Virus record (IMG/VR): IMGVR_UViG_3300026078_000017
Span: 62,001-126,000 of that record
DNA: 64,000 bases
Reading direction: 5' to 3' (one strand)
Shown: positions 11,587-61,455 of the stretch, piece after piece
How positions within the stretch are numbered: the stretch's first letter is position 1
How the letters are laid out: the number at the start of each line of letters is the position of its first letter
Position numbers and translations under genes: made by a program
The notes under the pieces: model-generated
Database searches by the model: none
The model's input: the letters and a program-made list of their open reading frames with translations, nothing else
What the model was told of the DNA's origin: nothing

Positions 11587-12237
11587 TTATTCTCCACCAA
11601 TCCCCATTCTTGGAGGATTATGGGAATATGGCTTTCTGTTGAGATTTTTCGAAACCTTTGCCATAACAGCCTTGGGTCCCTTTTGGTCAGAGTCATGACG
11701 ATCCATGTAAACCTCACCACCGCCAACCATGTTACGTCTAATAGAGTTTGTAGCCTTGTGTAAGCCCATCTTATCCAGAACGTTTTCCAGAATTTCTTCA
11801 ACGATTTCCCCAAGATAAGCTTGTGTTTGCTCTGACTCTGGCGTTGGAATGCCAACAAGGTGAGTTGTGATGGTTTCTGCTACATAACGAATCTTTGGTG
11901 GTTGAGCACCTGGCTTGTCTCCTTGCCAGAAGAAATCCCTGATTTGATCTCTGTGTTTTCCGTCATGAGTAACTGGACCGCTGGTTTCTCCGAAATTGTT
12001 AAAGTTCTCATCTGCGAGAGTACCGCCTCCATAAGGGGCAAGTAATGCTGCACCAGCAGAAACGCCATTAGCTTCTGAAACTTTCTTTTTGTCACCAGAC
12101 CACATAGTCTTGTGAGCTGGACCCATGTCCATTCCAAGGGGAGCACCACCAGTTGCACTAACTGCACCTGTTCCTACAGCGTTAAACTCGTCCAACTCTT
12201 GTTGAACCAGTTCCTCTATTAGTTGTTTAATCCCCAT
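11587..12237 (-). CDS. hypothetical protein with capsid-type leader
   Basis: MGIKQLIEELVQQELDE N-terminus; several internal [ILV]xE sites. Confidence 0.7.
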   Translation of the reverse strand: MGIKQLIEELVQQELDEFNAVGTGAVSATGGAPLGMDMGPAHKTMWSGDKKKVSEANGVSAGAALLAPYGGGTLADENFNNFGETSGPVTHDGKHRDQIRDFFWQGDKPGAQPPKIRYVAETITTHLVGIPTPESEQTQAYLGEIVEEILENVLDKMGLHKATNSIRRNMVGGGEVYMDRHDSDQKGPKAVMAKVSKNLNRKPYSHNPPRMGIGGE

Positions 12238-12859
12238 GTGTCATTCCTAGGTCGATACAGACGAGTCTGTTGTCTGGCGTAATACCCCAATGATCAAATC
12301 TGTCAATGTCGTCCATTCCAGCTTTTGTTAAATAGACGAACTTCCTGATAAGATCTTTTCCTCGTTTTGTAGGACGAACCTCATCGGCTTCTATGGGTTT
12401 CTTCTTTTTTTCGAATTCTTGAAATGCCTGAGCAGGGTCTTTTGGGGAGTTGTAGTTCTTCAGGAAGTCACCAAAGTGAATCAGCCAGTTTTCCGTAAGT
12501 CCGGTCGAACCAGTGAAGTCTTCATTTGTAGGCCATGTTTGTGCCCGTTCCACAATCATCCAGGCAAAATGTGGGTCATGGTCATAAATGACAGGACAGA
12601 AGTCCTTGCCAAAAGTCTCAAAGGCAGAGAACTCCATGGAACTTTGTTGAGCATCTGAGGCTATTTTGAGAACTTTGGTTGGAGTCAAGGCATAGGCAGT
12701 TCGTGCCATTCCATGCCCCAAAAGGACGAGTCCTGACTGTTTTGCATAGGCATTTCGTTCTTTATAGTTCCGAAGCTGCTTAAAATGCTCAAAGTCGAAG
12801 GATGCACCCTCGAAACTCTCCACAATTAAGGCTTCTAGGATTTCGCTTAGGAGTCCCAC
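12227..12859 (-). CDS. atypical protein-kinase-like protein (paralog 1)
   Basis: LLGHGMARTAY (Gly loop), KVLKIA (beta3 Lys), MEFSAFE (helix C Glu), DIDRFDHWG, IDLG (DFG-like). Confidence 0.7.
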   Translation of the reverse strand: MGLLSEILEALIVESFEGASFDFEHFKQLRNYKERNAYAKQSGLVLLGHGMARTAYALTPTKVLKIASDAQQSSMEFSAFETFGKDFCPVIYDHDPHFAWMIVERAQTWPTNEDFTGSTGLTENWLIHFGDFLKNYNSPKDPAQAFQEFEKKKKPIEADEVRPTKRGKDLIRKFVYLTKAGMDDIDRFDHWGITPDNRLVCIDLGMTHGD

Positions 12860-12867
12860 TCGGTTAA

Positions 12868-13542
12868 TTATACCGGCAAACCCTTGGAACGAAGAATTGC
12901 TTGCAACTTTTGCATGGAATCTTGTGGATTCTTGTGCAAAATGGCAATTCCGCCAGCGCTTTCAAACTTGGTCGTGTACTTGGTACGGTCATCGATCAAA
13001 ATCGAGTTAGGATTTGCGTACTTGTCCTTGTCCTGAGTACACACGAACTTGTCGAACATCCCAGGAAAATGGGAATCCATCCACTGTCGCTTTTCCTGCA
13101 TACAGCGTTCAATGTTGTTGTCTACAGGTGCCGTGAGAATACTTGGCTTACGACCAGTCATGGCTGCTGCCTGGGCAAGCATTTCCTTTGCTCCTGGCAT
13201 TTCTGGAAGATTGGCAAAGAAGCCCTCACGACCCGTCAGGGCGAACTTCTGTTCACGGTAGTGCTGCCATGCCTTCTTGAGAGCCTTGAGTCCAGGATCG
13301 GCTTGAGGACCCGCCAAACGCTTACGAAGCTCATCATCCGTGATGTGCATCAGGTCCGGGAAGTTTTTGAGCAATGCCATGTAGGTGTCACGTGCCTTTC
13401 CAGCACGTGGGTTTCCATCCAACACGCCTTGGTCGAAATCCGCCAGAACGCCATCCATGTCAAAGTAAATGACAGGCTCATTCAAGATGGACATTTCTGC
13501 CTCAACAATATTCTCGACCAAAATCTTTAATTCATCACTCAC
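12868..13542 (-). CDS. HAD-family 5'(3')-deoxyribonucleotidase
   Basis: IYFDMDGVLADF, ILTAP, EKRQW, ILIDDR. Confidence 0.88.
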   Translation of the reverse strand: MSDELKILVENIVEAEMSILNEPVIYFDMDGVLADFDQGVLDGNPRAGKARDTYMALLKNFPDLMHITDDELRKRLAGPQADPGLKALKKAWQHYREQKFALTGREGFFANLPEMPGAKEMLAQAAAMTGRKPSILTAPVDNNIERCMQEKRQWMDSHFPGMFDKFVCTQDKDKYANPNSILIDDRTKYTTKFESAGGIAILHKNPQDSMQKLQAILRSKGLPV

Positions 13543-37941: not shown

Positions 37942-38502
37942 ATGTCAGACTCAAAACTGCAATATAAGAAGATTCGAGAAAAGAAGTTCAAGCTCCTTGA
38001 TAAAGAGTCTGGCTATGACAAGCACATTGTTTTAAAGTCCTTCGAAATGCCAAATGGCATGACAGAGAACTTCTTTATCGACGACAACAAGAGTTCTGTG
38101 CAGATTTTTGCCATAACCGATGATGAACAAGTCTTGTGTGTCAAACAGTTCCGAGCTGGACCCGAGAAGGTTCAACTGGAAATCCCAGGTGGCGGATTGG
38201 AAGACGGGGAAAATCCACAAGAGGCAGCAGCAAGAGAACTTTTGGAAGAAACCGGGTATGCCGGTTCTGTACCTGTGTTTCTAGCTGCCTTGGACTATTC
38301 CCCATATTCTTCTGGCAAGAGATACATGTACATGTGTACCGAGTGCCAAAAGAAAAAGGAACTCGACTTGGATCCAAATGAGTTCCTTGAAGTAGTTCTC
38401 GTTCCCTTGGAACAATTTAGAAAACTAATGATTGAAGGCAAAGTAAGAGGTCATGACACAGCCTACATGGGGCTTGACAGACTTCATCGTCTGTCATTTT
38501 AG
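37942..38502 (+). CDS. NUDIX hydrolase (ADP-ribose pyrophosphatase-like)
   Basis: Nudix box GGGLEDGENPQEAAARELLEETG; KQFR...LEIPGG typical of ADPRase/NudF. Confidence 0.9.
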   Translation: MSDSKLQYKKIREKKFKLLDKESGYDKHIVLKSFEMPNGMTENFFIDDNKSSVQIFAITDDEQVLCVKQFRAGPEKVQLEIPGGGLEDGENPQEAAARELLEETGYAGSVPVFLAALDYSPYSSGKRYMYMCTECQKKKELDLDPNEFLEVVLVPLEQFRKLMIEGKVRGHDTAYMGLDRLHRLSF

Positions 38503-49686: not shown

Positions 49687-49704
49687 ACCTATAAATAGGT
49701 ACGC

Positions 49705-50631
49705 TTAGGCTCTTCGTGCTGGACGTGCCGTTTTCACTGAATCTTGTGGAGGTCTTGGAGCTGCTGGTTCTTGTGAGGCAGGCTGCTGTTGAGACTGTTG
49801 TCCAACCAAGCCCTGAGGTTCTTCTGGAGTCTGTGATTGACCTTCTGGTGGAGCTGTGTGATCCATGGCATGACCTGAAGGGGTGTAGTACTTACCAGAA
49901 ACCTCACGAGTAAATCCATAGTCAAGCAAGACAACTCGACCATCTGCGGTGTATCCGTAGTGACCAATGGTATTGTCATCGGCTGCATCAAATCTAGCAA
50001 CGTCACCCACAGACAAGCTTTCGCTGACCAACATCATCATGGTCTTAACGAAGGGACTTTGAGCAGCTTTCTGATATTGGTCTACTCTACGTTTTGTAAT
50101 CAAGTAGATTTGTTTACTTGCGTGTTCTGCTTCTATTTCTTCAAGTCTCTCCTGCCACTTGGCAAGGGTTGCCTTAAGGTAGGCATCTGGGTTGCTTTGA
50201 TCTTCAGCTTCATTCCATCCGCGAATGACATCCACGTAAGTAGTAAATGACAAACCTGTGAGTTGTTGAAACTGGTCTGCGGACCTGAGAGGGTTTGCAA
50301 TTTCTGACACAAGCCAGGAGAAGGCAGTTTTGTCCCAGTCAAAGATAGCAGTGACTACACCCTTTGTTCTTGGGTCTCTAAAAATGTCATACTCTGCACG
50401 GTTCTGTGCAAGACCAGCTTTATTGATGGCGATCTTGAGAACCTTGCCACCACTGAGAGCAAATACCGCTCTAGAAGAACCATAACCCATTTCTGGAAGG
50501 TTCTGTTTGGCATAGTCAATTCTTAGATTTGGAGAACCAAGGGTTTTGAACTGAGCAAAGTTGAACTTACGAAGAACTTCCGAAATGGCTTCTTCTGTGA
50601 GTTGTTCTACTAGTGTCTTTAAAATACTCAT
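49705..50631 (-). CDS. atypical protein-kinase-like protein (paralog 2)
   Basis: MGYGSSRAVF, KVLKIA, QNRAE, WLVSE, GHYGYTADG, LLDYG. Confidence 0.72.
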   Translation of the reverse strand: MSILKTLVEQLTEEAISEVLRKFNFAQFKTLGSPNLRIDYAKQNLPEMGYGSSRAVFALSGGKVLKIAINKAGLAQNRAEYDIFRDPRTKGVVTAIFDWDKTAFSWLVSEIANPLRSADQFQQLTGLSFTTYVDVIRGWNEAEDQSNPDAYLKATLAKWQERLEEIEAEHASKQIYLITKRRVDQYQKAAQSPFVKTMMMLVSESLSVGDVARFDAADDNTIGHYGYTADGRVVLLDYGFTREVSGKYYTPSGHAMDHTAPPEGQSQTPEEPQGLVGQQSQQQPASQEPAAPRPPQDSVKTARPARRA

Positions 50632-50637
50632 ACGTCC

Positions 50638-51438
50638 TCAGTAATGCTTTCTCATGACTTCCATGGTTGCACCGAAGTCGAGAATTCTAATCTGTCCATC
50701 TGCCGTTCTACCAAAATGATTTGGGAACAAGTCATGTGGATTTAACTTGTGGGTATACTTCATGTTGTCAACATCAATCCAAAACTTGTGAGACAGTGGG
50801 TCATTAAGCAAGTCTTGTAGTTGATGATATTTCTGTGTGTATTTTTGCAGAGTACTTTGGGCATGAGCAAGATCCCACTGAGAAGTGTTTGGATCTGCCT
50901 TGGCTTTATTCAACTTGAGTTCCCAGTTTCTGATGTCGATATCGTAAGTGTCAAGCCAACCCTCAACAGTTTCTGGAGTTTCCAATATTACAGTCATCCA
51001 AAACTTTGGATCTATGTGGGTGTATTTCTCAAACTCTTCCCACTGAATTTCCTTGACAAGTTCTGAAATGAGCCACTTATAGTCAGGACTATAGTCAAAG
51101 ATTCTTGTAACCAAGGAGTTATCCTTGTTGTGAGTGAAAATCTCAAGCTCAGCTTGATTTTGAGAAATGCCTGCTGGATTCAGAGCAACCTTAAGAACCT
51201 TGCTTGAACTCAAGGCAAATGCCACACGAGAAGAACCTCTACCAAGTTCTGGAAGAAACTTCTTGGCATAGACAATCTCTGGGTGTTCCTTGCCAAGCCA
51301 AGCAAAGTCTTCTTCTTCGGATCTGTTACTAGGACGAACGTCTCCAGCAGAAATTTGCTTAAAGGTATTCAAGTTGAAGCCTCTGAAGGCTTCAGCAATT
51401 AACTCGTGAATCAGGTTTTCTAAAATACTGACTTTCAT
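50638..51438 (-). CDS. atypical protein-kinase-like protein (paralog 3)
   Basis: LGRGSSRVAF, KVLKVA, QNQAE, WLISE, DLFPNHFGRTADG, ILDFG. Confidence 0.75.
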   Translation of the reverse strand: MKVSILENLIHELIAEAFRGFNLNTFKQISAGDVRPSNRSEEEDFAWLGKEHPEIVYAKKFLPELGRGSSRVAFALSSSKVLKVALNPAGISQNQAELEIFTHNKDNSLVTRIFDYSPDYKWLISELVKEIQWEEFEKYTHIDPKFWMTVILETPETVEGWLDTYDIDIRNWELKLNKAKADPNTSQWDLAHAQSTLQKYTQKYHQLQDLLNDPLSHKFWIDVDNMKYTHKLNPHDLFPNHFGRTADGQIRILDFGATMEVMRKHY

Positions 51439-52388: not shown

Positions 52389-53657
52389 TTATCCCATTCT
52401 AATGATGTATGCCGGTGGCATTGGGAGATAGTTCATTTGTTTCTGAAGGCTTTCGGCCAAAGTTGCTTGTTGTTCGGCAAGGTTTGCATAGGTAAGTCCA
52501 TCCAAAGTTGCACGAAGTCCACCATCTCCATTAAGGAGACTATCCTTGTCTTCCCTTGCTTGTTCAATCAAATCATCACCATTTAAGGTAAGTTCGCCAG
52601 AAGGAATTGGGAAGTTCTTGAACTTGCTTCTGATCAAACCAAGAAGTTCCTTTGCAAGTGCAAGAGTGTACTCATAAATCCAGTTTCTCGACCAAGGGTT
52701 AAGAGACTTATAGTCAATCAAACCAAATGGAACGTTGGCAGGATTGGACACACCATAAATCGTTGCATCTGGGAAAGACTGGAACACGTTTATATTACCA
52801 AATGGCAAGGCAGACCCAGAGACAGAACCTGTAATCAACAACTCTGGAGCTGGAGACATTGGGTAGGAAATACGAATCCACAACTTGTCATTATAGCCAG
52901 GAACCATGTTACTTGGAACTGGTAAAATACGAATGTGACGACCAGAGATTCTGTAGGAGTAGTGAGAACGTCTCACGCGACCAGCAGCTTCCAACATACC
53001 TGCTCTAAGAACGTCCTCAAACAACGGAAGAACATAAAATCTGGTATCTGGGATGTAGGATTCAACTGGCAAACCCTGAGCAACAAAGTTACTTGCAAGG
53101 TTTGAGTTAAACACATACTGAAGTGGTGCAAAGTGGTACACCTCATGGATTTTCATTTTTCCGGCAGTTCCTGAGGGCATCAGGGCAGCAAGGGGAGTTC
53201 CTGAGTCATCCTTGAGTTCTGTGTAAAGGTCATAGTCCTGACGACCCATGTCAAGGGTAATGGAACCTGAGTAGGTGTCTTGAATGCCACCAAAGCCAAC
53301 CTCGGCAGCATATGGTTCAGCCTGACGAACAAGGAATTCTAGGGTAGGTCTGACGTAGGTGTTCGTAAGGTTAATACTGGAAAGATTGGTGTTTGTATTT
53401 AGGGAACCTGTAGGGGAACCCAAAAGGCTTGAAAGATTGCTTTTTGCCTGGTATTCTATCATCAAAGCATTGAAGTTCAGGGTAGCTTCTTCAAAACATG
53501 CCCATATTTCCTTTTTTGTGAGTTCAACCGACAAAACATCTTCACCAAGTTTTCTAAGGACGAAAACAACAACTTTATCAGCATCCACCTGGTATGCTGG
53601 GTCTGAGTCAAAGAAACCAAACGGGGTTGGTTTCAAAACGTTCATGAAGTTTGCCAT
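52389..53657 (-). CDS. neck / head-tail adaptor protein (T4 gp13-like)
   Basis: LSVELT...CFEEA, YTLALAKELLGLIRSKF...PIPSGELTLNGDDL. Confidence 0.7.
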   Translation of the reverse strand: MANFMNVLKPTPFGFFDSDPAYQVDADKVVVFVLRKLGEDVLSVELTKKEIWACFEEATLNFNALMIEYQAKSNLSSLLGSPTGSLNTNTNLSSINLTNTYVRPTLEFLVRQAEPYAAEVGFGGIQDTYSGSITLDMGRQDYDLYTELKDDSGTPLAALMPSGTAGKMKIHEVYHFAPLQYVFNSNLASNFVAQGLPVESYIPDTRFYVLPLFEDVLRAGMLEAAGRVRRSHYSYRISGRHIRILPVPSNMVPGYNDKLWIRISYPMSPAPELLITGSVSGSALPFGNINVFQSFPDATIYGVSNPANVPFGLIDYKSLNPWSRNWIYEYTLALAKELLGLIRSKFKNFPIPSGELTLNGDDLIEQAREDKDSLLNGDGGLRATLDGLTYANLAEQQATLAESLQKQMNYLPMPPAYIIRMG

Positions 53658-53687
53658 TATTGTGCTTCCTCGTACGAGGGTAATTAG

Positions 53688-54245
53688 ATGAATACACCAA
53701 GCATTATTACAAATAAGAAACTATGCGTTTTTGATTTTGACTTCACCCTTGTGGCTTCAGAAAAGCAGTATATCACTGTTTATCATGAAAATGGGGGACA
53801 AACAGTTCTGGACAGCTTCAACTGGTCAGAATATCAACAAAAACCAGGGGACAAGTTCGATTTCTCAGAATTTGACTACCTGAACAAACCCGAAAAGATT
53901 GAACAGCCTTGGAAGACCTTCCTGGACCGAATGTGGTCCAATGGGTATGACCACACCTATATCCTTACCGCCAGAGGCTCCACAGTGCCCCTAGAAAAAT
54001 ACTTTGATGACCATGGCATACGAGTACAGTGCGTAGGCATCGGAATCCCTCCTGGGGCGAATAACGGTCACTACAAGGCTAAGTGGATTGAAGATAAAAT
54101 CCAAGAGGGATTTTATGGTACCGTGGAGTTCTTTGACGACCGAGATGACTGTGTTACACATGTTGGTGAACTAGGTCAGAAATATCCACATGTTAAGTTC
54201 CACGTGTGGCAAGTGACAAATGGAGAAATGAATAAATGCTTTTAG
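53688..54245 (+). CDS. HAD-superfamily phosphatase ('Swiss Army Knife' RNA-repair HAD-like)
   Basis: VFDFDFTL (motif I), ILTARG (motif II), KAKWI, VEFFDDR (motif IV). Confidence 0.8.
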   Translation: MNTPSIITNKKLCVFDFDFTLVASEKQYITVYHENGGQTVLDSFNWSEYQQKPGDKFDFSEFDYLNKPEKIEQPWKTFLDRMWSNGYDHTYILTARGSTVPLEKYFDDHGIRVQCVGIGIPPGANNGHYKAKWIEDKIQEGFYGTVEFFDDRDDCVTHVGELGQKYPHVKFHVWQVTNGEMNKCF

Positions 54246-55099
54246 AAATCGCTGTTGGTGATGCTTATGGTGCCGGGTTTGAGTTCGCTTCCAAGGACAG
54301 ACTCAAAGAACTAAACAATGACCTGAAACAGTATTATCCACATAATCTGCCTGGTCATTTACCACCTGGCTCTTATACAGATGACACCCAAATGTCAATT
54401 GCCATTTCTGAGATGATTTTGAATGACACTCCCTGGACCGTCGAAAATCTGGCACAGAAGTTTGTTGAGGTCTACAAGAGAGACCCAAGAAATGGGTATT
54501 CCCGTAAGTTTCAAGAAATCCTTGACAAGATTACCACAGGTGACGAACTGAGAGAGAAGATTATTGCTAACTCAACTGCCTGTGGGTCTGCCATGAGAGC
54601 TGTGCCAATCGGACTTCTCAAGTACGAACAAGAAATTATGGAAAAGGCTCATATTCAGGCAAGCATCACACATAACACAACAGATGGTATCATGTGTGCA
54701 AAGGCTGTGGCTCTTGCGGCACACTATGCAAGAACGTATCAACAGTGTAGCATTAATTCCTACCTCAACTGGCACCTCAAGTCTGAAATAGACTGGACAG
54801 GGTGGGAACCTGGCACTTACGTAACGTCAGCAGGCATGCCAGTAGTTCGGGCTGCTATTTCTGCCTGGAAACGCAACACAAAAATGTCGGATATTCTTAA
54901 GCAGTGTGTTGCTTATGAGGGTGACGTAGATTCGGTCAGTGCAATTGCTCTTGGCATTGCCAGCCTAGACAAGAAAGTAGAAAAAGACCTACCCGCCGTC
55001 CTCGTGGATAACCTTGAGAACAACGGGTTTGGTCGAGACTACTTGATTGAACTTGACAGGAAGCTTCTTACTCTTCCACGACTTCAAGATGCTGGTTGA
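54236..55099 (+). CDS. ADP-ribosylglycohydrolase (DraG/ARH family)
   Basis: IAVGDAYGAG, YTDDTQM, GSAMRA, ITHN, GDVDSVSAIA. Confidence 0.92.
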   Translation: MLLEIAVGDAYGAGFEFASKDRLKELNNDLKQYYPHNLPGHLPPGSYTDDTQMSIAISEMILNDTPWTVENLAQKFVEVYKRDPRNGYSRKFQEILDKITTGDELREKIIANSTACGSAMRAVPIGLLKYEQEIMEKAHIQASITHNTTDGIMCAKAVALAAHYARTYQQCSINSYLNWHLKSEIDWTGWEPGTYVTSAGMPVVRAAISAWKRNTKMSDILKQCVAYEGDVDSVSAIALGIASLDKKVEKDLPAVLVDNLENNGFGRDYLIELDRKLLTLPRLQDAG

Positions 55100-55817
55100 T
55101 ATAACCCCTGTCCTCAGAGAACAACGGGATTTCATCATCAACACCCCATTTTGAGCGTGGAGCAACAGAATCTGCAACCAAGTAGGTTTCCTTGACGATG
55201 CACCTTCCACGCTTCTGGTAAGTTGGGTAGTTTCCCCAATTCTTTCCGGTCTTGAGGAAAATCATTTCCTGAAGTTCGGCACTATTCTTGCCATCAAGCT
55301 GAGAGTGCGAGTACAAGGACCGAGCAACCATCTGAACAGAGTTTCGGGTTGCATCCTGCTGACGCCACAAGAAATAGTTGCAAACTTCACTCTCGGGCAA
55401 AACAAATGCCCGAGCATCAAATGCTGCAATCTTGGTTTCTCCGAAAATGGTTGGACTCAAGGCAGTCATGTATCCAGCAGCAATGGAAGCGGAAACCGAA
55501 ACCATTTTCTGGATCTGGTTTTCAAACCAAGGTGTGGATGAAAATCGCTTGTAGTTGTGAACCAAGACCGAGATTTCATCAGACTGCACATAAGCAATCT
55601 GTGCACCCTGAATCTGCTCACACAAGGCAATCCCAACATTATCCATTGCCGAGATGAGACGTTCATCAAATGGACGCTCACAAGAAGCAGTGTAGGTGTG
55701 AAATGCCTTGCCGTCGATTCGAAGAATGACAGGCATGCGAATTGGAAGAGACTGTCTGAAAGCCCCTTCATAGATTTTCATTCGGTCGCCAAGTGAGGTT
55801 TTATCTGATGTTCCCAT
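55068..55817 (-). CDS. thg1: tRNA(His) guanylyltransferase-like protein (Thg1/TLP)
   Basis: RIDGKAFHTYT, YVQSDEIS, QKMVS, FDAR, YFLWRQQDATRNS, KRG. Confidence 0.93.
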   Translation of the reverse strand: MGTSDKTSLGDRMKIYEGAFRQSLPIRMPVILRIDGKAFHTYTASCERPFDERLISAMDNVGIALCEQIQGAQIAYVQSDEISVLVHNYKRFSSTPWFENQIQKMVSVSASIAAGYMTALSPTIFGETKIAAFDARAFVLPESEVCNYFLWRQQDATRNSVQMVARSLYSHSQLDGKNSAELQEMIFLKTGKNWGNYPTYQKRGRCIVKETYLVADSVAPRSKWGVDDEIPLFSEDRGYINQHLEVVEE

Positions 55818-55826
55818 AGAAGGAAC

Positions 55827-55854
55827 AGTGTATCAGACATCATCAAATGGTCAA
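55827..55854 (-). promoter_or_regulatory. sigma70-type promoter for thg1, TTGACC-N16-TACACT with extended -10
   Basis: Minus strand TTGACCatttgatgatgtcTGATACACT; same layout as 911-938. Confidence 0.6.
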
Positions 55855-55858
55855 GAAC

Positions 55859-56725
55859 TTATTTCAACTTCACCTTACGGATTACTTTTGCGTAAGGTGC
55901 ATAAAATACAGTTGTACCCTCTGTGTTATTTAGGACGCTGATAGGTCCCTGAGGTTCAACCTCATAAACTGCTGGGTGTCCTCCAAGGGAGTGAACTGCT
56001 CTTCCTGCATAAATTAAGGCAGATCTTGGGTCTTTCGTGAAGAAAACCACATCAAGATTTTTCTTTCTTCCCTTCTCGGAAACCTTGTTGGTCTTGGAAG
56101 GAGGAAGGATTAGACTTCCAGGTTTGAAGTCATGAGAAGTCCCATGATAATAAACCGTGTGAGTGTTTTGATGTAAGTGACTTGCATCTTTTGGTTGATC
56201 GTCTTCACCCATAATAACTGCTGCTGAAGCTGGAGTGTTTGCTTCTGGATCCATGTCTGCCCAGTCTGTAGATTCTCCAAAAGGCATGTTGTGTTGATCG
56301 TAGGAATATTTTCTAAAGTCCTTGAATGGATCGTGTCTGATTTTATCATTCTTGGAACGAAGATACTTTGCCAATCCTCTACGATAAGCATGACCGAATG
56401 GAAGAAAGGTCATCCACCTTGTCCACTTGTCAAGTTTCTCCATGTCAGAACGGTTAAGCGTTGCTCTACCTTTTCTTTTTGTTAAGAGTTTGTTGATCAA
56501 CACGTCAATCTGAGCTTCCTCATGAGAAGCCTGTTGAGGTGTCATGGATGTGTCACGAAGTTTTTGTTTTGCCTTCTTCAAGGTTGACACCATGTGATCA
56601 TCTCCAGGAGTCATAAATGAGTCAGGACCAATGGTTTCAAAAACCATCGGAACTTCTTCTGTGATAACTTCCTTGACAATCTCTTCAATCAAGGCATGAA
56701 GAGACTCTTCGATCATTTTGGTCAT
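55859..56725 (-). CDS. leader-bearing protein with C-terminal Arr-like ADP-ribosyltransferase domain
   Basis: YYHGTSHDFKPGSLILP...VFFT...VYEVEPQG resembles the rifampin ADP-ribosyltransferase pattern FYHGT...PGDL...Y...IYxVEPTG. Confidence 0.7.
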   Translation of the reverse strand: MTKMIEESLHALIEEIVKEVITEEVPMVFETIGPDSFMTPGDDHMVSTLKKAKQKLRDTSMTPQQASHEEAQIDVLINKLLTKRKGRATLNRSDMEKLDKWTRWMTFLPFGHAYRRGLAKYLRSKNDKIRHDPFKDFRKYSYDQHNMPFGESTDWADMDPEANTPASAAVIMGEDDQPKDASHLHQNTHTVYYHGTSHDFKPGSLILPPSKTNKVSEKGRKKNLDVVFFTKDPRSALIYAGRAVHSLGGHPAVYEVEPQGPISVLNNTEGTTVFYAPYAKVIRKVKLK

Positions 56726-57342
56726 TATTTGTGCTTCTTGTTGTAGCGTGCCCAGGCGATCTGAAATGGACGAGGGGAATCCTCTCCGTACTTCTTCTTA
56801 AGGGCTAGAACCATGTCCTCAAGCCCTGGAGGTGCCTTCTCTGTCATAACTTGTTTGACAGCCTCATCAACCATTGCCTTAAGAGGGTCTTTTGCTTCTG
56901 GCATTCCTGGCTTGGACTTGGAAAGAATCTGCATCAAACCTTCTTTCTCTCGGATTGTCTTTGTGATAATCCCAAGAGCAGTGTTCATTTGGTCTTTTTC
57001 TTCTGGAGTTTGAGCATTCCCCAAGGCATCCATGATTTCCTGACGAACCTTCTCGTCTTCACCCATCGTGGTGAGAATATCACGAACAAGGTAGTTACTT
57101 TCCGCTTCCTTACCAATGTCGTCCATTGGATTTTCCTTGAGTTCATGACCAGTTTCGGCTGCATGTTGCATAGCCTGGTCACCATACTTTTTACGACCAA
57201 TAGAAGCAGCAACTGCTCCAGGATTGGTTACGCCCTTCTGGTGCGCAAGAGAACGCTTTAGTTTGTCAAAACCCATGTGCTTTTCCTGAATGGTTCTGTC
57301 AATCAGGGCTTCAAGAACATTTTCAAGTACAATCTTTTTCAT
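56725..57342 (-). CDS. hypothetical protein, probable internal head protein with small basic modules
   Basis: Leader ending TIQE; modules HMGFDKLKRSL...IGRKKYG and EKAPPG...QIAWARYNK. Confidence 0.7.
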   Translation of the reverse strand: MKKIVLENVLEALIDRTIQEKHMGFDKLKRSLAHQKGVTNPGAVAASIGRKKYGDQAMQHAAETGHELKENPMDDIGKEAESNYLVRDILTTMGEDEKVRQEIMDALGNAQTPEEKDQMNTALGIITKTIREKEGLMQILSKSKPGMPEAKDPLKAMVDEAVKQVMTEKAPPGLEDMVLALKKKYGEDSPRPFQIAWARYNKKHK

Positions 57343-57410
57343 TTGAACCTCAAACTACGTCCATAAATAGGGTTTTCAAATGGAAAGGGCTACCAAAGTA
57401 GCCCGTTCTA

Positions 57411-58106: not shown

Positions 58107-58781
58107 TTACTTGATTTTTGGCAATCTTAGCTTCTGCAAAAGCCAACTATAATCCATCTGTTTCAAACTAGTATCTATTTTTGGACAAAAAGTCCAATTG
58201 TTTCCTGTGTTAAAATATGGTGCATTTGGTGGAATTATAACTTCATCCAACCAAATAATTGTTGTTTCTTCAAAATAATAACCATCTTCTACTTTGCTTA
58301 AAAAACGAGGACATGCTAAACAAATTAGCTCATCAGGATTGTAATTGGCAATTACAACATGATCAGGTTTTTGATAAGAAGCAACACTAGGAGGCAAATT
58401 TAAATGATTTATTCTTTTTTGAGGCCAAAAAGGATGTAAATCATATGCAACTCTAAATTCTCCTGGAACCGAATGATCTTCTCTCCATATAGAAATTTTT
58501 CGATGGAGATCAAACAAATGTGGATGTTGTCTAAACTTTATTTGCAAATTTGGTTCTGTTTTTGTGAGAAAGACACATGAAACATTAACAAAATTACCAG
58601 ACCAATCAATTTTTGATTTTATTAGAGGTATTAATGAAGTATTGACAAGTTCATCAATAATTTTCCATTTTTTACTCCTTGGCATTTTCCCAAAATCAAT
58701 TAGTTCATTCAATTCTTCTTTAGTAAGGTGTGTAAAAGTAACCAAAACTGGCTCAATTTGGAGATTAAATGGTTTTTTCAC
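58107..58781 (-). CDS. hypothetical protein (AT-rich)
   Basis: 224 aa; a hand-counted 60-nt line is about 30% GC. Confidence 0.65.
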   Translation of the reverse strand: MKKPFNLQIEPVLVTFTHLTKEELNELIDFGKMPRSKKWKIIDELVNTSLIPLIKSKIDWSGNFVNVSCVFLTKTEPNLQIKFRQHPHLFDLHRKISIWREDHSVPGEFRVAYDLHPFWPQKRINHLNLPPSVASYQKPDHVVIANYNPDELICLACPRFLSKVEDGYYFEETTIIWLDEVIIPPNAPYFNTGNNWTFCPKIDTSLKQMDYSWLLQKLRLPKIK

Positions 58782-59439
58782 TTTTCACCCATCCACCACT
58801 GCTCTTAACCTTACCCCTGACCATCAAGTGCAAAGCCTTGTAAGAGAGCCCTCTCTGAAGAGCAAACTCTCTTAAGGAGCCTGTGACTTCTACAGTTTCT
58901 TGTGTGTTCTTGTTCACAAGAGTTACACCAGCCGAATGTCCTGCCCATAACCCATTTTTGCAGTTCTCTGCTGCCTTTGCACGGGCTTCTGGTGTTCTCT
59001 TGGCTATGGCACTTGCCAAAGCTCTTTTGGTTTTTACCTCAAGAGATGGAGACTTACAACGTTTATCTGTTAAAGGGTTTGGTGGCTGTTTGGCTCTTGA
59101 ACCCATTCTATTAGCTCTTGCTTCTTTTTCAATGTTGTAGCAATGCTTTTGGTTATCATAGTGTTTATCAAGATAGGTCTGTTCAACCGCAAGACAGTCT
59201 TCTGTTGTTCCTTGTACTATCTCAAGTACTTCAAACAGAAAATTCTCTTGACCACACTTTACGAAGTCATTTTGAAGAAATGAGTTTGTGTGCGTTCCTC
59301 CCATTAAGTTATTGAAATGGTTGTTCGCTCTTTTATAGAAGCACTTGGTACTACCAAAGTATCGTCTCCCATTTGAGAGATTCAAAATTCTATAGACGCC
59401 ACCATCACTAGCATTTGCAGAACCATAAAGTCGTTTCAT
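58765..59439 (-). mobile_element. free-standing GIY-YIG homing endonuclease (Seg-like)
   Basis: GVYRILNLSNGRRYFGST..FYKRANNH...FEVLE...EQTYLD...YN; C-terminal helix-turn-helix-like segment. Confidence 0.85.
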
Positions 59440-59538: not shown

Positions 59539-61455
59539 TTAGATGACGTTCATGTCGAGAACGGTGACAGTTGCGTAGAAGTCTGCGCGAACCATCTTTT
59601 TGCCGTAGCGAGTCATGATACCCTTACGTGGAGTGAAGTCCTCCTGAGCGTAAATAACTGGTGTCAAGATGAGTGGAACGTATGGTGCGTAAATGTAACC
59701 CGACTCAAGGAAGGTGTTACCCTTAAGACCAATCAAAATGCGGTTTGCTGGGAAGTATGGGTCCTTGTAAACCGTGTAACGGTTGTTAAGGGTACCTGCG
59801 GACTCAGCGCCGAGTGTCATGCTGTCTTGGACTTGACCATCTGTGTCAATCTTGTAGGACGACTTGTAGGTCTGCAAGTGCTCAAGGATTGTGCAAACGT
59901 CTGGGGACGTTACGATGAAGTTTGCAGAACCGCGAAGCGTCTTACGTGCGATTGTGTTTGCTGCATCGGTAATAGTCTCAAGGAGCGTCTGGTACCAGTC
60001 TTGGACGTTGACGTAAGCTTGTGGGCCTGCGGACAATGCCGAAGAGTGGAGCGCTTCTGCGCCAGTCTGCTTGTTAACGATCTTACCTGGAGCGCGGGAC
60101 CAGTAAAGGTTTGCTGCGTTTGCCTGTGTAAGAAGGTCGTTGAGGATTTCACGGTCGATGTCGAGCGTGATGTGCTCAGAAAGAATGTTTGTCAATTCAA
60201 CTTCAACGTCGATGTTGTAGAACGCTGTAAGGTCTTGTGCCATTTCTGGTGACCAACGTGCGCGCAACTTACGGGTTGTTGCTGTTACTGCAACGGACTC
60301 AATCTTGATGTCAATCTCTGGGATGACAGGCGATGGAGGGTTGATTGCGAAATCAGTTTCGAACGAAGGAATCGTAAGAGTCGAACCATCGGAGTTAACC
60401 GAAAGTGCGTCAGAGATTGCAGCCGAAGCTGTTACCTTTGTTGTTGCTGTTGCGTTTGGCTGTGGAGCTGTACCACCGTTTGCCACGCGAATGACGAACT
60501 GAATGTGGGAGCCGCCGATTGGGTCTGGTGTGAACAAACCAGATGTTGGGTCCCAAGAACCGCGCTTGTTGAGCTTACGGAGGTTGAGAACGCCGTTACC
60601 ACCTTGATACTGATCGCCCCATGCAGTTGCCGAGCCTACTGCTGAACCGAAACCAGTGATTGCAATCTGCTCAAGCGAGTTGAGGTCTGCGCCACCGATG
60701 TTTGCAGTTACTTCAGATGCGGACATGTGAAGGAATACAAAGTCAAGGGCGTTGTTTGCAAGGTCAACTTCCATCTTGGAGTCGAAAAGAGCAAAACGTG
60801 CGTTGAAACCAACGAACTGTGCGCTTGTGCCAACGACTGCCGTTGTGCCAGTTGTCCAGATAGAACCCGATGCCCAGTAACCAACAGAGTCGGTCGTTGC
60901 ATTGAGGTTAAGGCTCTGCTTGTGAACCTTTGTGAAACCTGTGCCTACAAGGTCGTACTGACCACCAGTTGCAAAGGAGCCAGAACGAATTCTTGCGCCA
61001 ACTGGGTTATTGTAGATGGAGTCACCCTTCTTGTAGGTCTCGTTAACGGAGGAGTTCGACAAGTTTACACCTGCGTCGCCACCAACGTTGTTACCATACA
61101 TGTAATCGAGATAGAACAAAAGACCCGATGGCAAGCTCATTGGCTGCACGGAAACGACTTCATTTGCAATCAAGCCGGCGAATACACGACGGACGATTGG
61201 GAATGCGACGTTTGTGAAACCAGCTACTTGACCACTCGACACGAGGTTTGCACCACCGGTCGACAAAGCATTGGACTCACGAAGGAGTTCTGCTGCTTGG
61301 TTTTCAAGGAGACGACTCATCGAGTCACGGGTGTTGCCCTTGAGACCCGAGAGAAGACCTGTTTTGTCCCACTTCTCGTTAATGCGTGGCATGTCTGCGC
61401 CGAGGGACTTTCTCGAAACGCCTTCTGCAATCATGTCTAATGAAAATGACTTCAT
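59539..61455 (-). CDS. major capsid protein (T4 gp23-like)
   Basis: LLENQ, VSVQPMSLPSGLLFYLD, TRKLRARWSPEMAQDL, IDREIL, GYIYAPYVPL, TPRKGIMTRYG. Confidence 0.96.
   Translation of the reverse strand: MKSFSLDMIAEGVSRKSLGADMPRINEKWDKTGLLSGLKGNTRDSMSRLLENQAAELLRESNALSTGGANLVSSGQVAGFTNVAFPIVRRVFAGLIANEVVSVQPMSLPSGLLFYLDYMYGNNVGGDAGVNLSNSSVNETYKKGDSIYNNPVGARIRSGSFATGGQYDLVGTGFTKVHKQSLNLNATTDSVGYWASGSIWTTGTTAVVGTSAQFVGFNARFALFDSKMEVDLANNALDFVFLHMSASEVTANIGGADLNSLEQIAITGFGSAVGSATAWGDQYQGGNGVLNLRKLNKRGSWDPTSGLFTPDPIGGSHIQFVIRVANGGTAPQPNATATTKVTASAAISDALSVNSDGSTLTIPSFETDFAINPPSPVIPEIDIKIESVAVTATTRKLRARWSPEMAQDLTAFYNIDVEVELTNILSEHITLDIDREILNDLLTQANAANLYWSRAPGKIVNKQTGAEALHSSALSAGPQAYVNVQDWYQTLLETITDAANTIARKTLRGSANFIVTSPDVCTILEHLQTYKSSYKIDTDGQVQDSMTLGAESAGTLNNRYTVYKDPYFPANRILIGLKGNTFLESGYIYAPYVPLILTPVIYAQEDFTPRKGIMTRYGKKMVRADFYATVTVLDMNVI

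Follow-up and report, generated by a model that had tools for sequence, protein, structure and literature searches.

Four neighbouring genes in a metagenomic phage sequence, encoding a HAD-superfamily phosphatase (HAD), an ADP-ribosylglycohydrolase (ARH), a Thg1-like polymerase and an Arr-like ADP-ribosyltransferase (ART), raise the question of whether they form one ADP-ribosylation and RNA-repair system or belong to separate units that share a location. The stretch of DNA analysed, referred to here as the window, is 64,000 nucleotides (nt) long and corresponds to bases 62001–126000 of the 320,479-bp IMG/VR record IMGVR_UViG_3300026078_000017 (completeness estimate 81%), which comes from a T4-superfamily jumbo myovirus of ~320 kb; coordinates are those of the window unless stated otherwise. 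A preliminary description of the window had proposed either a self-contained reversible modification switch or a counter-defence kit, and the four open reading frames (ORFs) that it listed were found at the same coordinates with their catalytic motifs intact. Comparison with related phages indicated that this region fits better with a variable cargo slot between capsid and neck genes, holding two separate units, than with a single four-part system. The reading preferred here, tentatively and with somewhat less than even confidence, is that one unit encodes an injected writer similar to the T4 ART known as Alt, and that the other, an untagged HAD-ARH pair on the antisense strand, encodes the eraser. 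The four genes (product lengths in amino acids, aa) are:

53688–54245, plus strand: HAD-superfamily phosphatase of 185 aa, antisense to the late genes and without the N-terminal tag; found in 8/8 slots
54236–55099, plus strand: ADP-ribosylglycohydrolase, 287 aa (DraG/Tri1-sized), PF03747
55068–55817, minus strand: Thg1-like protein of 249 aa, a 3'-5' polymerase of bacterial TLP type, PF04446 and phrog_4717
55859–56725, minus strand: ART, 288 aa

Relatives of the phage were retrieved via the ART and ARH proteins. The gene order in all of them is Portal_T4, Peptidase_S77 (gp21 protease), two small genes, a gene for a ~780-aa protein, Gp23, a variable slot, gp13, further genes and then sheath genes, and a gp21-like protease (Peptidase_S77, 93 bits) is encoded by this genome too. 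As the order Gp23, slot, gp13 is conserved, the four genes sit in a capsid-neck slot, which has the following borders in the window:

59539–61455, minus strand: gp23-type major capsid protein, upstream border (homologues with PF07068 Gp23; tblastn matches T4-superfamily capsid proteins)
52389–53657, minus strand: gp13-type neck protein, downstream border (homologues with PF26809 Phage_T4_gp13; 68–82% identity)

Co-occurrence was scored by tblastn of the window proteins against the loci of the relatives, giving eight complete slots including that of the window, in phages with capsid proteins 83–91% identical to that of the window. The contents of these slots are:

Window, L008 and L014: full ART, Thg1, ARH and HAD
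L015: ART as two ORFs, ARH and HAD; no Thg1
L004 and L021: full ART, Thg1 and HAD; no ARH
L006: full ART and HAD; no Thg1, no ARH
L010: N-terminal module of the ART only, then a VWA-like gene (403 aa), and HAD; no Thg1, no ARH

The HAD and the N-terminal module of the ART were therefore found in 8/8 slots, the ART domain in 7/8, Thg1 in 5/8 and ARH in 4/8. The joint occurrence anticipated by the preliminary description was seen in part, as all four genes are together in three of the eight slots, with ARH missing from four and Thg1 from three. Because the slot genes are mixed and matched among relatives, the region is better regarded as a modular accessory slot than as a fixed four-part machine. 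ARH was present in 4/7 slots with an ART domain and in the single slot without one it was absent (n = 8 slots), which favours a link between writer and eraser.

The assignment of the ART as Arr-like was borne out, as residues 192–264 match Arr-ms (PF12120) and the protein matches phrog_2110 (7.6e-27). The PF12120 score is marginal (26.2 bits versus a 25-bit cut-off; 28.6 bits in the genome search). In Foldseek searches with the ART domain, the Arr structures 2hw2 (E 1.1e-4) and 9iaf (E 1.7e-4) were retrieved with prob 1.0, and other ART folds (KptA/Tpt1, RES and pertussis toxin; E 0.2–0.9) were far behind. No match to an Alt/VIP2 (R-S-E clade) family was found for the ART, and a PDB sequence search with the full-length protein gave nothing useful. 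A profile alignment of the ART domain with Arr-2 and Arr-ms showed that H-G-T and E-x-G-R are kept, and the F/Y-H-G-T, E-x-G-R and VEPxG segments of Arr (2HW2) are conserved. The most invariant stretch in the wider ART family is HG[ST]...LPP..T..SEKGRKKNLD.VFFT, and the Glu of 'VEP' is not universal, being lost in T4-like short forms. Catalytic competence is assumed here.

An alignment of 18 members, together with an AF2 model, divides the ART into an acidic amphipathic N-terminal helix (consensus L-x-x-L-I-E-E-I-V-x-E), a variable linker, a conserved basic helical domain with 27 invariant columns (17 sequences), an acidic linker and the ART domain. The positions of the three main segments are:

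56651–56725, minus strand: N-terminal acidic amphipathic tag, MTKMIEESLHALIEEIVKEVITEE, with several L/I-x-E sites, conserved across the ART family
56297–56509, minus strand: basic helical middle domain, residues 73–143, net charge +11
55862–56158, minus strand: ART domain of the Arr clade, residues 190–288 (PF12120, AF2 pLDDT >90, Foldseek)

The N-terminal module is lineage-restricted, with 12 cluster representatives among 1.84 billion. It stands alone in L010 (10001–11764, with the VWA-like gene next to it), P0027 and P0162–P0167, is a separate ORF beside the ART domain in L015, and in P0168 precedes a degenerate ART domain in which the His and SEKGRKKNL are lost. Retention of the module where the ART domain is degenerate or absent (P0168, L010) points to a role of its own. 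A complex prediction for the N-terminal module and ART domain of L015 scored 0.00; it was folded without alignments and has no bearing on binding. The ART domain was found elsewhere fused to Toprim_2 (P0031) or to KOW-like basic regions (P0029, P0032), or inserted in a NUDIX fold (P0035), and these arrangements hint at a nucleotide or nucleic-acid substrate class. Stand-alone ARTs of ~105 aa are encoded by the T4-like phages RB16 (L011, 3974–4291) and Aes012 (L012, 4064–4402) in a hyperplastic region near gp24/hoc/inh and srd/rnlB, which likewise lies just downstream of capsid genes; the N-terminal half of the ART studied here showed no homology to the genes upstream of these short ARTs.

The tag is shared with other proteins, one of which is encoded immediately upstream of the ART:

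56725–57342, minus strand: p205, a tagged small protein with N-terminus MKKIVLENVLEALID; 1-nt overlap between its stop and the ART start

Homologues of p205 retain the tag, and the remainder of the protein is fast-evolving, with identity down to 11–28%. A hidden Markov model of the tag, built on ART-family N-termini alone, was run against ~450 genome ORFs, and 7 of 24 non-self matches were found to start at residues 2–9, where ~1 was expected (binomial P = 4.7e-5). The tagged ORFs include p205, p216, three phrog_4301 paralogues and a phrog_2643-like protein, and no tag was found on the HAD, ARH, Thg1 or gp13 proteins. The phrog_4301 paralogues (annotated 'unknown function'; 50638–51438, 49705–50631 and 12227–12859, all on the minus strand) show segments corresponding to a glycine loop, VLK, D-x-x-x-x-N and DFG, and lie next to T7-kinase, Pkinase, RIO and APH in the atlas. 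On both counts they resemble protein kinases, and they are possibly injected; in relatives, 2–3 copies are found in tandem between neck and sheath genes. A second tagged cluster includes a HAD resembling phrog_2643 '5'-3' deoxyribonucleotidase' (12868–13542, minus strand; DMDGV motif) and p216 (11587–12237, minus strand; 216 aa), for which there were no database matches.

In T4, the gp21 protease cuts after L/I-X-E, a capsid-targeting sequence (CTS) of 10 residues is enough for head loading, and Alt is loaded into the head, trimmed and ejected (PMC9026906). About 44% of phage ARTs are in head-gene contexts suggestive of packaging (PMC9503650). The tag described here carries several [LIV]-x-E sites and, by analogy with T4, is a candidate CTS or gp21 propeptide. 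The capsid protein of the phage includes the L-x-E site LLRE followed by S, which presumably corresponds to the maturation site of T4 gp23 (alignment by eye). Unlike the T4 CTS, which is of the MKTYQEFIAE type, the tag is ~20–25 residues long, acidic and amphipathic. The ART also differs from Alt in belonging to the Arr (H-Y-D-type) clade and not to the R-S-E Alt/VIP2 clade, in having a lineage-specific basic domain between tag and enzyme, and in that its packaging is predicted from genes. The likeness to T4, with its Alt and internal proteins, lies in membership of the T4 superfamily, a gp21-type protease and an ART gene among late head genes, and in an N-terminal L/I-x-E peptide common to otherwise unrelated, fast-evolving proteins (PMC9026906).

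Features likely to govern expression of the slot genes are:

57387–57404, minus strand: terminator-like hairpin (7 bp, 5 GC, T-rich tail), closing the upstream unit
57364–57370, minus strand: CTATTTA, 28 nt ahead of p205, candidate core of a late promoter
53668–53679, strandless: perfect 12-nt palindrome CCTCGTACGAGG within the 30 nt that separate the starts of the divergent gp13 and HAD genes

Upstream of p205, the order is hairpin (57404–57387), CTATTTA (57370–57364), GAGG and ATG. The genome has 24 copies of CTATTTA, and 10 of these precede a start on the same strand by no more than 60 nt (~1 expected). Starts downstream of the motif include those of p205, the portal gene, a head gene and a gene immediately before the sheath genes; besides the p205 site, copies are located at 49698 and, past the window end in the same numbering, at 64408 and 68624. 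L014 and L002 also have the motif at their first slot gene. From this distribution, CTATTTA may be the late-promoter core of the lineage, replacing the TATAAATA of T4, which has one copy in the window against 0.62 expected and was rejected as unused by the phage.

The ART gene is co-oriented with the late genes and HAD-ARH is antisense to the late block, an opposite orientation that, by analogy with T4, suggests earlier expression. Palindrome CCTCGTACGAGG gives a GAGG Shine-Dalgarno sequence on both strands, for gp13 and for HAD. The sequence ACGAGGAAGC, as in the gp13-HAD gap, also precedes a sheath gene.

The coupling of HAD to ARH was confirmed, as the ARH start and the HAD stop share 10 nt, and an overlap of 10–11 nt is kept in L008, L014 and L015, i.e. 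in every relative with ARH. The ARH matches PF03747 at 1.3e-36 (127 bits versus a cut-off of 26.2), and MJ1187, ARH3 and DraG in the PDB sequence search. Motifs D9, YTDDT (47–51), TH (145–146) and GDxD (229–232) are invariant in 11 homologues. Its scores are under the NCBIfam equivalog cut-offs for DraG (57.3 versus 337) and Tri1 (45.1 versus 490), and a pattern scan of IMG/VR for close ARH relatives found none. A Myxococcus homologue, which looks immunity-like, adjoins a gene for a 4672-aa Rhs protein ending in DUF3990, presumably an ART-like domain. Among jumbo phages, only ~5% carry ARH genes, which are rare in phages (PMC9503650).

The HAD had no match in a Pfam search, matched only phrog_415 'polynucleotide kinase' (3.2e-6) in PHROGs, and gave nothing useful in the PDB sequence search. 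Motifs I–IV (DFDFT ... [TS]AR ... K ... DDRxD) are nevertheless invariant in nine homologues and, together with a Rossmannoid HAD fold, place the protein in the HAD superfamily. It has no homology to the '5'-3' deoxyribonucleotidases' of RB16 or to the 178-aa protein encoded beside the ARH of another large phage (L016).

Coupling of an ADP-ribosylglycohydrolase (ARG) to a phosphatase, HAD phosphatases included, is a described theme of host systems (Iyer et al. 2022, PMC9503650). As the HAD-ARH pair is untagged, antisense and coupled, it is consistent with intracellular removal of ADP-ribose plus a phosphatase step, as in these host systems. The likeness extends to the tightness of the coupling and to recurrent Nudix and vWA partners, a VWA-like gene being present in the L010 slot, whereas the host systems are bacterial and proposed to counter viral ARTs, and the phage pair is beside the phage's own ART (PMC9503650).

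From gene identities, intact motifs, synteny, tag sharing, orientation and motif enrichment, we infer the following scheme of packaging, timing, targets and a writer-eraser link. The first unit, on the late strand after the hairpin and CTATTTA, would consist of p205, ART and the Thg1-like gene. The ART tag would be a T4-style capsid-targeting propeptide handled by the gp21-type prohead protease, and the ART would be a late product, packaged in the head and, like T4 Alt, injected together with the DNA, whereupon it would ADP-ribosylate a host target using NAD+. The second unit, HAD-ARH, on the opposite strand, untagged and translationally coupled, would be made in the infected cell. There, the DraG/Tri1-like ARH, with its motifs intact, would strip ADP-ribose from a macromolecule, most likely limiting or resetting the marks of the injected ART, and the HAD would act on a phosphorylated by-product. 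The Thg1-like enzyme would be an independent tRNA 5'-end repair gene riding in the capsid-neck slot. The earlier idea of an injected writer and a later eraser thus gains indirect support from the tagged, late-oriented ART and the untagged, antisense HAD-ARH.

Several observations weigh against this scheme. Half of the ART-bearing relatives (L004, L021 and L006) have no ARH. Among isolate phage records, the ART domain was found in 610, mostly in T4-like phages as a separate protein of ~100 aa, Thg1 in 164, mostly from Bacillus and other phages, and ARH of this type in 23, and the difference between 610 and 23 indicates that the ART family needs no eraser; as a rule, the family acts in the absence of both ARH and Thg1. 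In the ART domain, an invariant Phe aligns with Tyr49 of Arr and the Arr Asp84 region is not alignable, though the His is invariant. The HAD family, represented at 33–42% identity in no fewer than 278 viral and 289 metagenomic loci, is uncharacterised, DUF2608-like in its wider part (L021–L180), common in marine and freshwater myovirus contigs and neighboured by 2OG-Fe(II) oxygenases and GHMP kinase; in 59 of 62 HAD loci of at least 12 kb, no ART, ARH, Thg1, gp13 or gp23 was found within 7 kb. CTATTTA is missing at the position of the first slot gene in 4/7 relatives, both it and the tag were spotted post hoc, and some tagged ORFs may not be head proteins. Sequencing runs with the phage sequence are rhizosphere and soil metagenomes, all DNA, and the sequencing-run search returned no RNA runs. 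Finally, the ARH homologue in L016 has NAPRTase and CTP_transf_like (NMNAT-type) genes as neighbours and no ART in its vicinity, and a Nostoc ARH homologue follows a NUDIX gene in one operon.

Known systems of related type bear on what would be new in this scheme. The T4 enzymes Alt, ModA and ModB are textbook ARTs of host takeover, and for such phage ARTs no phage-encoded eraser is known. In DraT/DraG and Tre1/Tri1, an ART is paired with an ARH-family hydrolase with an intact binuclear-metal site, as here; unlike in those systems, the phage writer and eraser belong to separate units encoded on different strands, the eraser is optional (4/8) and coupled to a HAD phosphatase, and the pair is known from genes alone. 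Presumed-packaged ARTs beside head genes, phage ARGs and ARG-phosphatase coupling are already known (PMC9503650). The new elements are an Arr-clade presumed-packaged ART, a lineage-specific delivery module of tag plus basic domain, the presence of the tag on kinase-like and nucleotidase-like enzymes, and an adjacent phage HAD-ARH pair. If the preferred reading is true, it would give a function to the uncharacterised Arr-like domain of at least 610 sequenced phages, extend T4-style capsid targeting to a distant jumbo lineage in which several enzyme classes are delivered, and provide a tractable writer/eraser pair for the study of timed ADP-ribosylation in infection.

A more far-reaching version is decidedly speculative and unlikely. 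It holds that the shared tag would load a suite of enzymes for injection (the Arr-clade ART, at least three kinase-like proteins, a nucleotidase-like protein and small hypervariable proteins) and that the untagged, early-strand HAD-ARH would end the action of the ART. This would be the first self-contained phage-encoded cycle of reversible ADP-ribosylation and the first role for the ~100-aa Arr-like family of hundreds of T4-like phages.

The main rival, doubtful on balance though to be taken seriously, is that ARH-HAD, with NUDIX and NAMPT, serves NAD+/ADP-ribose housekeeping or counter-defence, clearing host-ART marks, or the ADP-ribose products or signals of NAD+-consuming defences, and recycling them into NAD+. 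The NUDIX gene reported earlier was verified (PF00293, 1.8e-19):

37942–38502, plus strand: NUDIX hydrolase, NudE/ADPRase-like, 186 aa, 16 kb away, antisense to the late genes

In NCBIfam it matches NudE 'ADP compounds hydrolase' best (1e-16, under the cut-off), and it is 29% identical to the NUDIX protein encoded in front of the Nostoc ARH homologue. This rival also draws on the ARH homologues of ~50% identity that are common in bacteria, cyanobacteria especially, on the Nostoc operon and the L016 neighbourhood mentioned above, and on the NAPRTase-family protein encoded by the genome alongside the NudE-like NUDIX. Handling of released ADP-ribose by ARG, phosphatase and Nudix has been proposed for host systems, whereas phage ARGs have been argued to favour macromolecular conjugates (PMC9503650). 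The distance of 16 kb to the NUDIX gene and the restriction of ARH, within the lineage, to slots with an ART domain argue against this rival, as do searches for its expected partners. PADLOC models gave no match for HAD, ARH, Thg1 or ART, matched the NUDIX only with PDC-S07 and revealed no link to DarTG/CmdTAC, and Macro (in a genome search), 2H and NADAR partners were not found.

Also unlikely, and slightly more so, is the explanation that there is no functional link at all, with the slot a hot spot for unrelated accessory genes (morons, homing endonucleases) and adjacency a matter of insertion tolerance. Slot content differs among phages with capsid proteins as similar as 83–91%, the VWA-like gene of L010 takes the place of the ART domain and Thg1, and the HAD family elsewhere is independent of the other slot genes. 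Genes for GIY-YIG homing endonucleases are located in or beside the slot in the window (58765–59439, minus strand), L003 (1040–1936) and L006 (9282–9941), and their presence in several relatives is consistent with a recombination hot spot. By contrast, the overlaps of 10–11 nt between HAD and ARH and of 1 nt between p205 and ART argue for co-expression within units, and ARH is confined to slots with an ART domain, though with n = 8. If the region is a mere cargo slot, it would still mark the capsid-neck interval as a hot spot of recombination. A search for repeats in 52–59.6 kb found short matches at chance level, and nothing more.

A third explanation, improbable in our estimation, is a kit for healing nucleic-acid ends, in which a Tpt1/KptA-like ART would act on phosphorylated RNA ends, the HAD would remove 3'-phosphates and the ARH ADP-ribose caps, Thg1 would rebuild tRNA 5' ends and RNA ligases would seal. 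The closest structures to the HAD are the phosphatase domains of T4 Pnkp and Pnkp1, and this fold ranking is what supports the RNA-repair label that the preliminary description had attached to the HAD; the superfamily assignment stands and a repair role is putative. Unlike T4 Pnkp, in which the 3'-phosphatase domain has the closest fold, the phage HAD has no kinase domain or ligase neighbour, and the wider HAD family is found without RNA-repair context. The ART adjoins Thg1 in 5/8 slots, recalling the Tpt1-Thg1 operons reported from bacteria (PMC8120803), its middle domain is strongly basic, and the Toprim_2 fusion and NUDIX insertion of the ART domain elsewhere would also suit such a kit, as would the 38 tRNA genes and three PF09414 RNA ligases of the genome. 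However, the ART falls outside the KptA family, having no PF01885 match and matching KptA/Tpt1 structures only at E 0.4–0.9. Genome searches for RtcB and for a T4 Rnl1-type ligase were negative, the Rnl1 model having matched no control genome either.

That the ART is a true Arr, modifying a rifamycin-like small molecule to shield the infected host, as actinophage ARTs of the Arr family have been interpreted (PMC9503650), is very improbable despite the Pfam Arr-ms match over the cut-off and Arr being the best structural match, as the ART is far under the NCBIfam rifampin_ARR equivalog cut-offs (22.7 versus 130 bits; 15.9 versus 250) and so an Arr-clade relative, its domain is ~100 aa compared with ~140 for Arr and has Phe for Tyr49, and it is fused to a tag and basic domain (to Toprim or NUDIX elsewhere) and encoded amid structural genes of the head module, unlike Arr among resistance genes.

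The Thg1-like protein is read here as independent cargo of the slot, encoded by a tRNA 5'-end repair gene. It matches PF04446 at 1.7e-27 (96.3 bits versus a cut-off of 29.2) and phrog_4717 at 2.5e-88, and aligns with the Bacillus thuringiensis TLP (4kgk) at 4e-72 over 237 residues (8–244), RIDG and SDE segments included; the latter enzyme is a templated 5'-end repair polymerase. The gene is convergent with ARH, as described earlier, their 3' ends overlapping by 32 nt. The sigma70 promoter once assigned to it did not hold up, consisting of two 9/12 matches in a region where a scan gave 16 sites against 13.1 ± 3.3 in shuffles. A need for Thg1 in adding G-1 to the phage tRNA-His was considered and rejected, as G-1 is genome-encoded opposite C73.

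No near-identical DNA was found among isolate phages. The closest isolates by gp23-like capsid protein (tblastn) are Flavobacterium, Microcystis and cyanophage myoviruses, together with huge metagenomic phages. An Rfam scan of the window returned zero RNA families. Outside the window, at 137–166 kb and 0–4 kb of the genome, 38 tRNA genes and a tmRNA gene (tag AADNAPLALAA) were identified, and this tRNA region includes the NAPRTase-family gene (149269–149901) and one of the RNA ligase genes (141520–142014). The phage ORFs are readable in table 11, and thus no recoding is claimed. A tRNA with anticodon CTA at genome positions 139981–140057 (minus strand), labelled 'Pyl' by ARAGORN, is an amber suppressor, and TAG is the stop codon of 2/60 ORFs in the structural window compared with 45/390 elsewhere in the genome.

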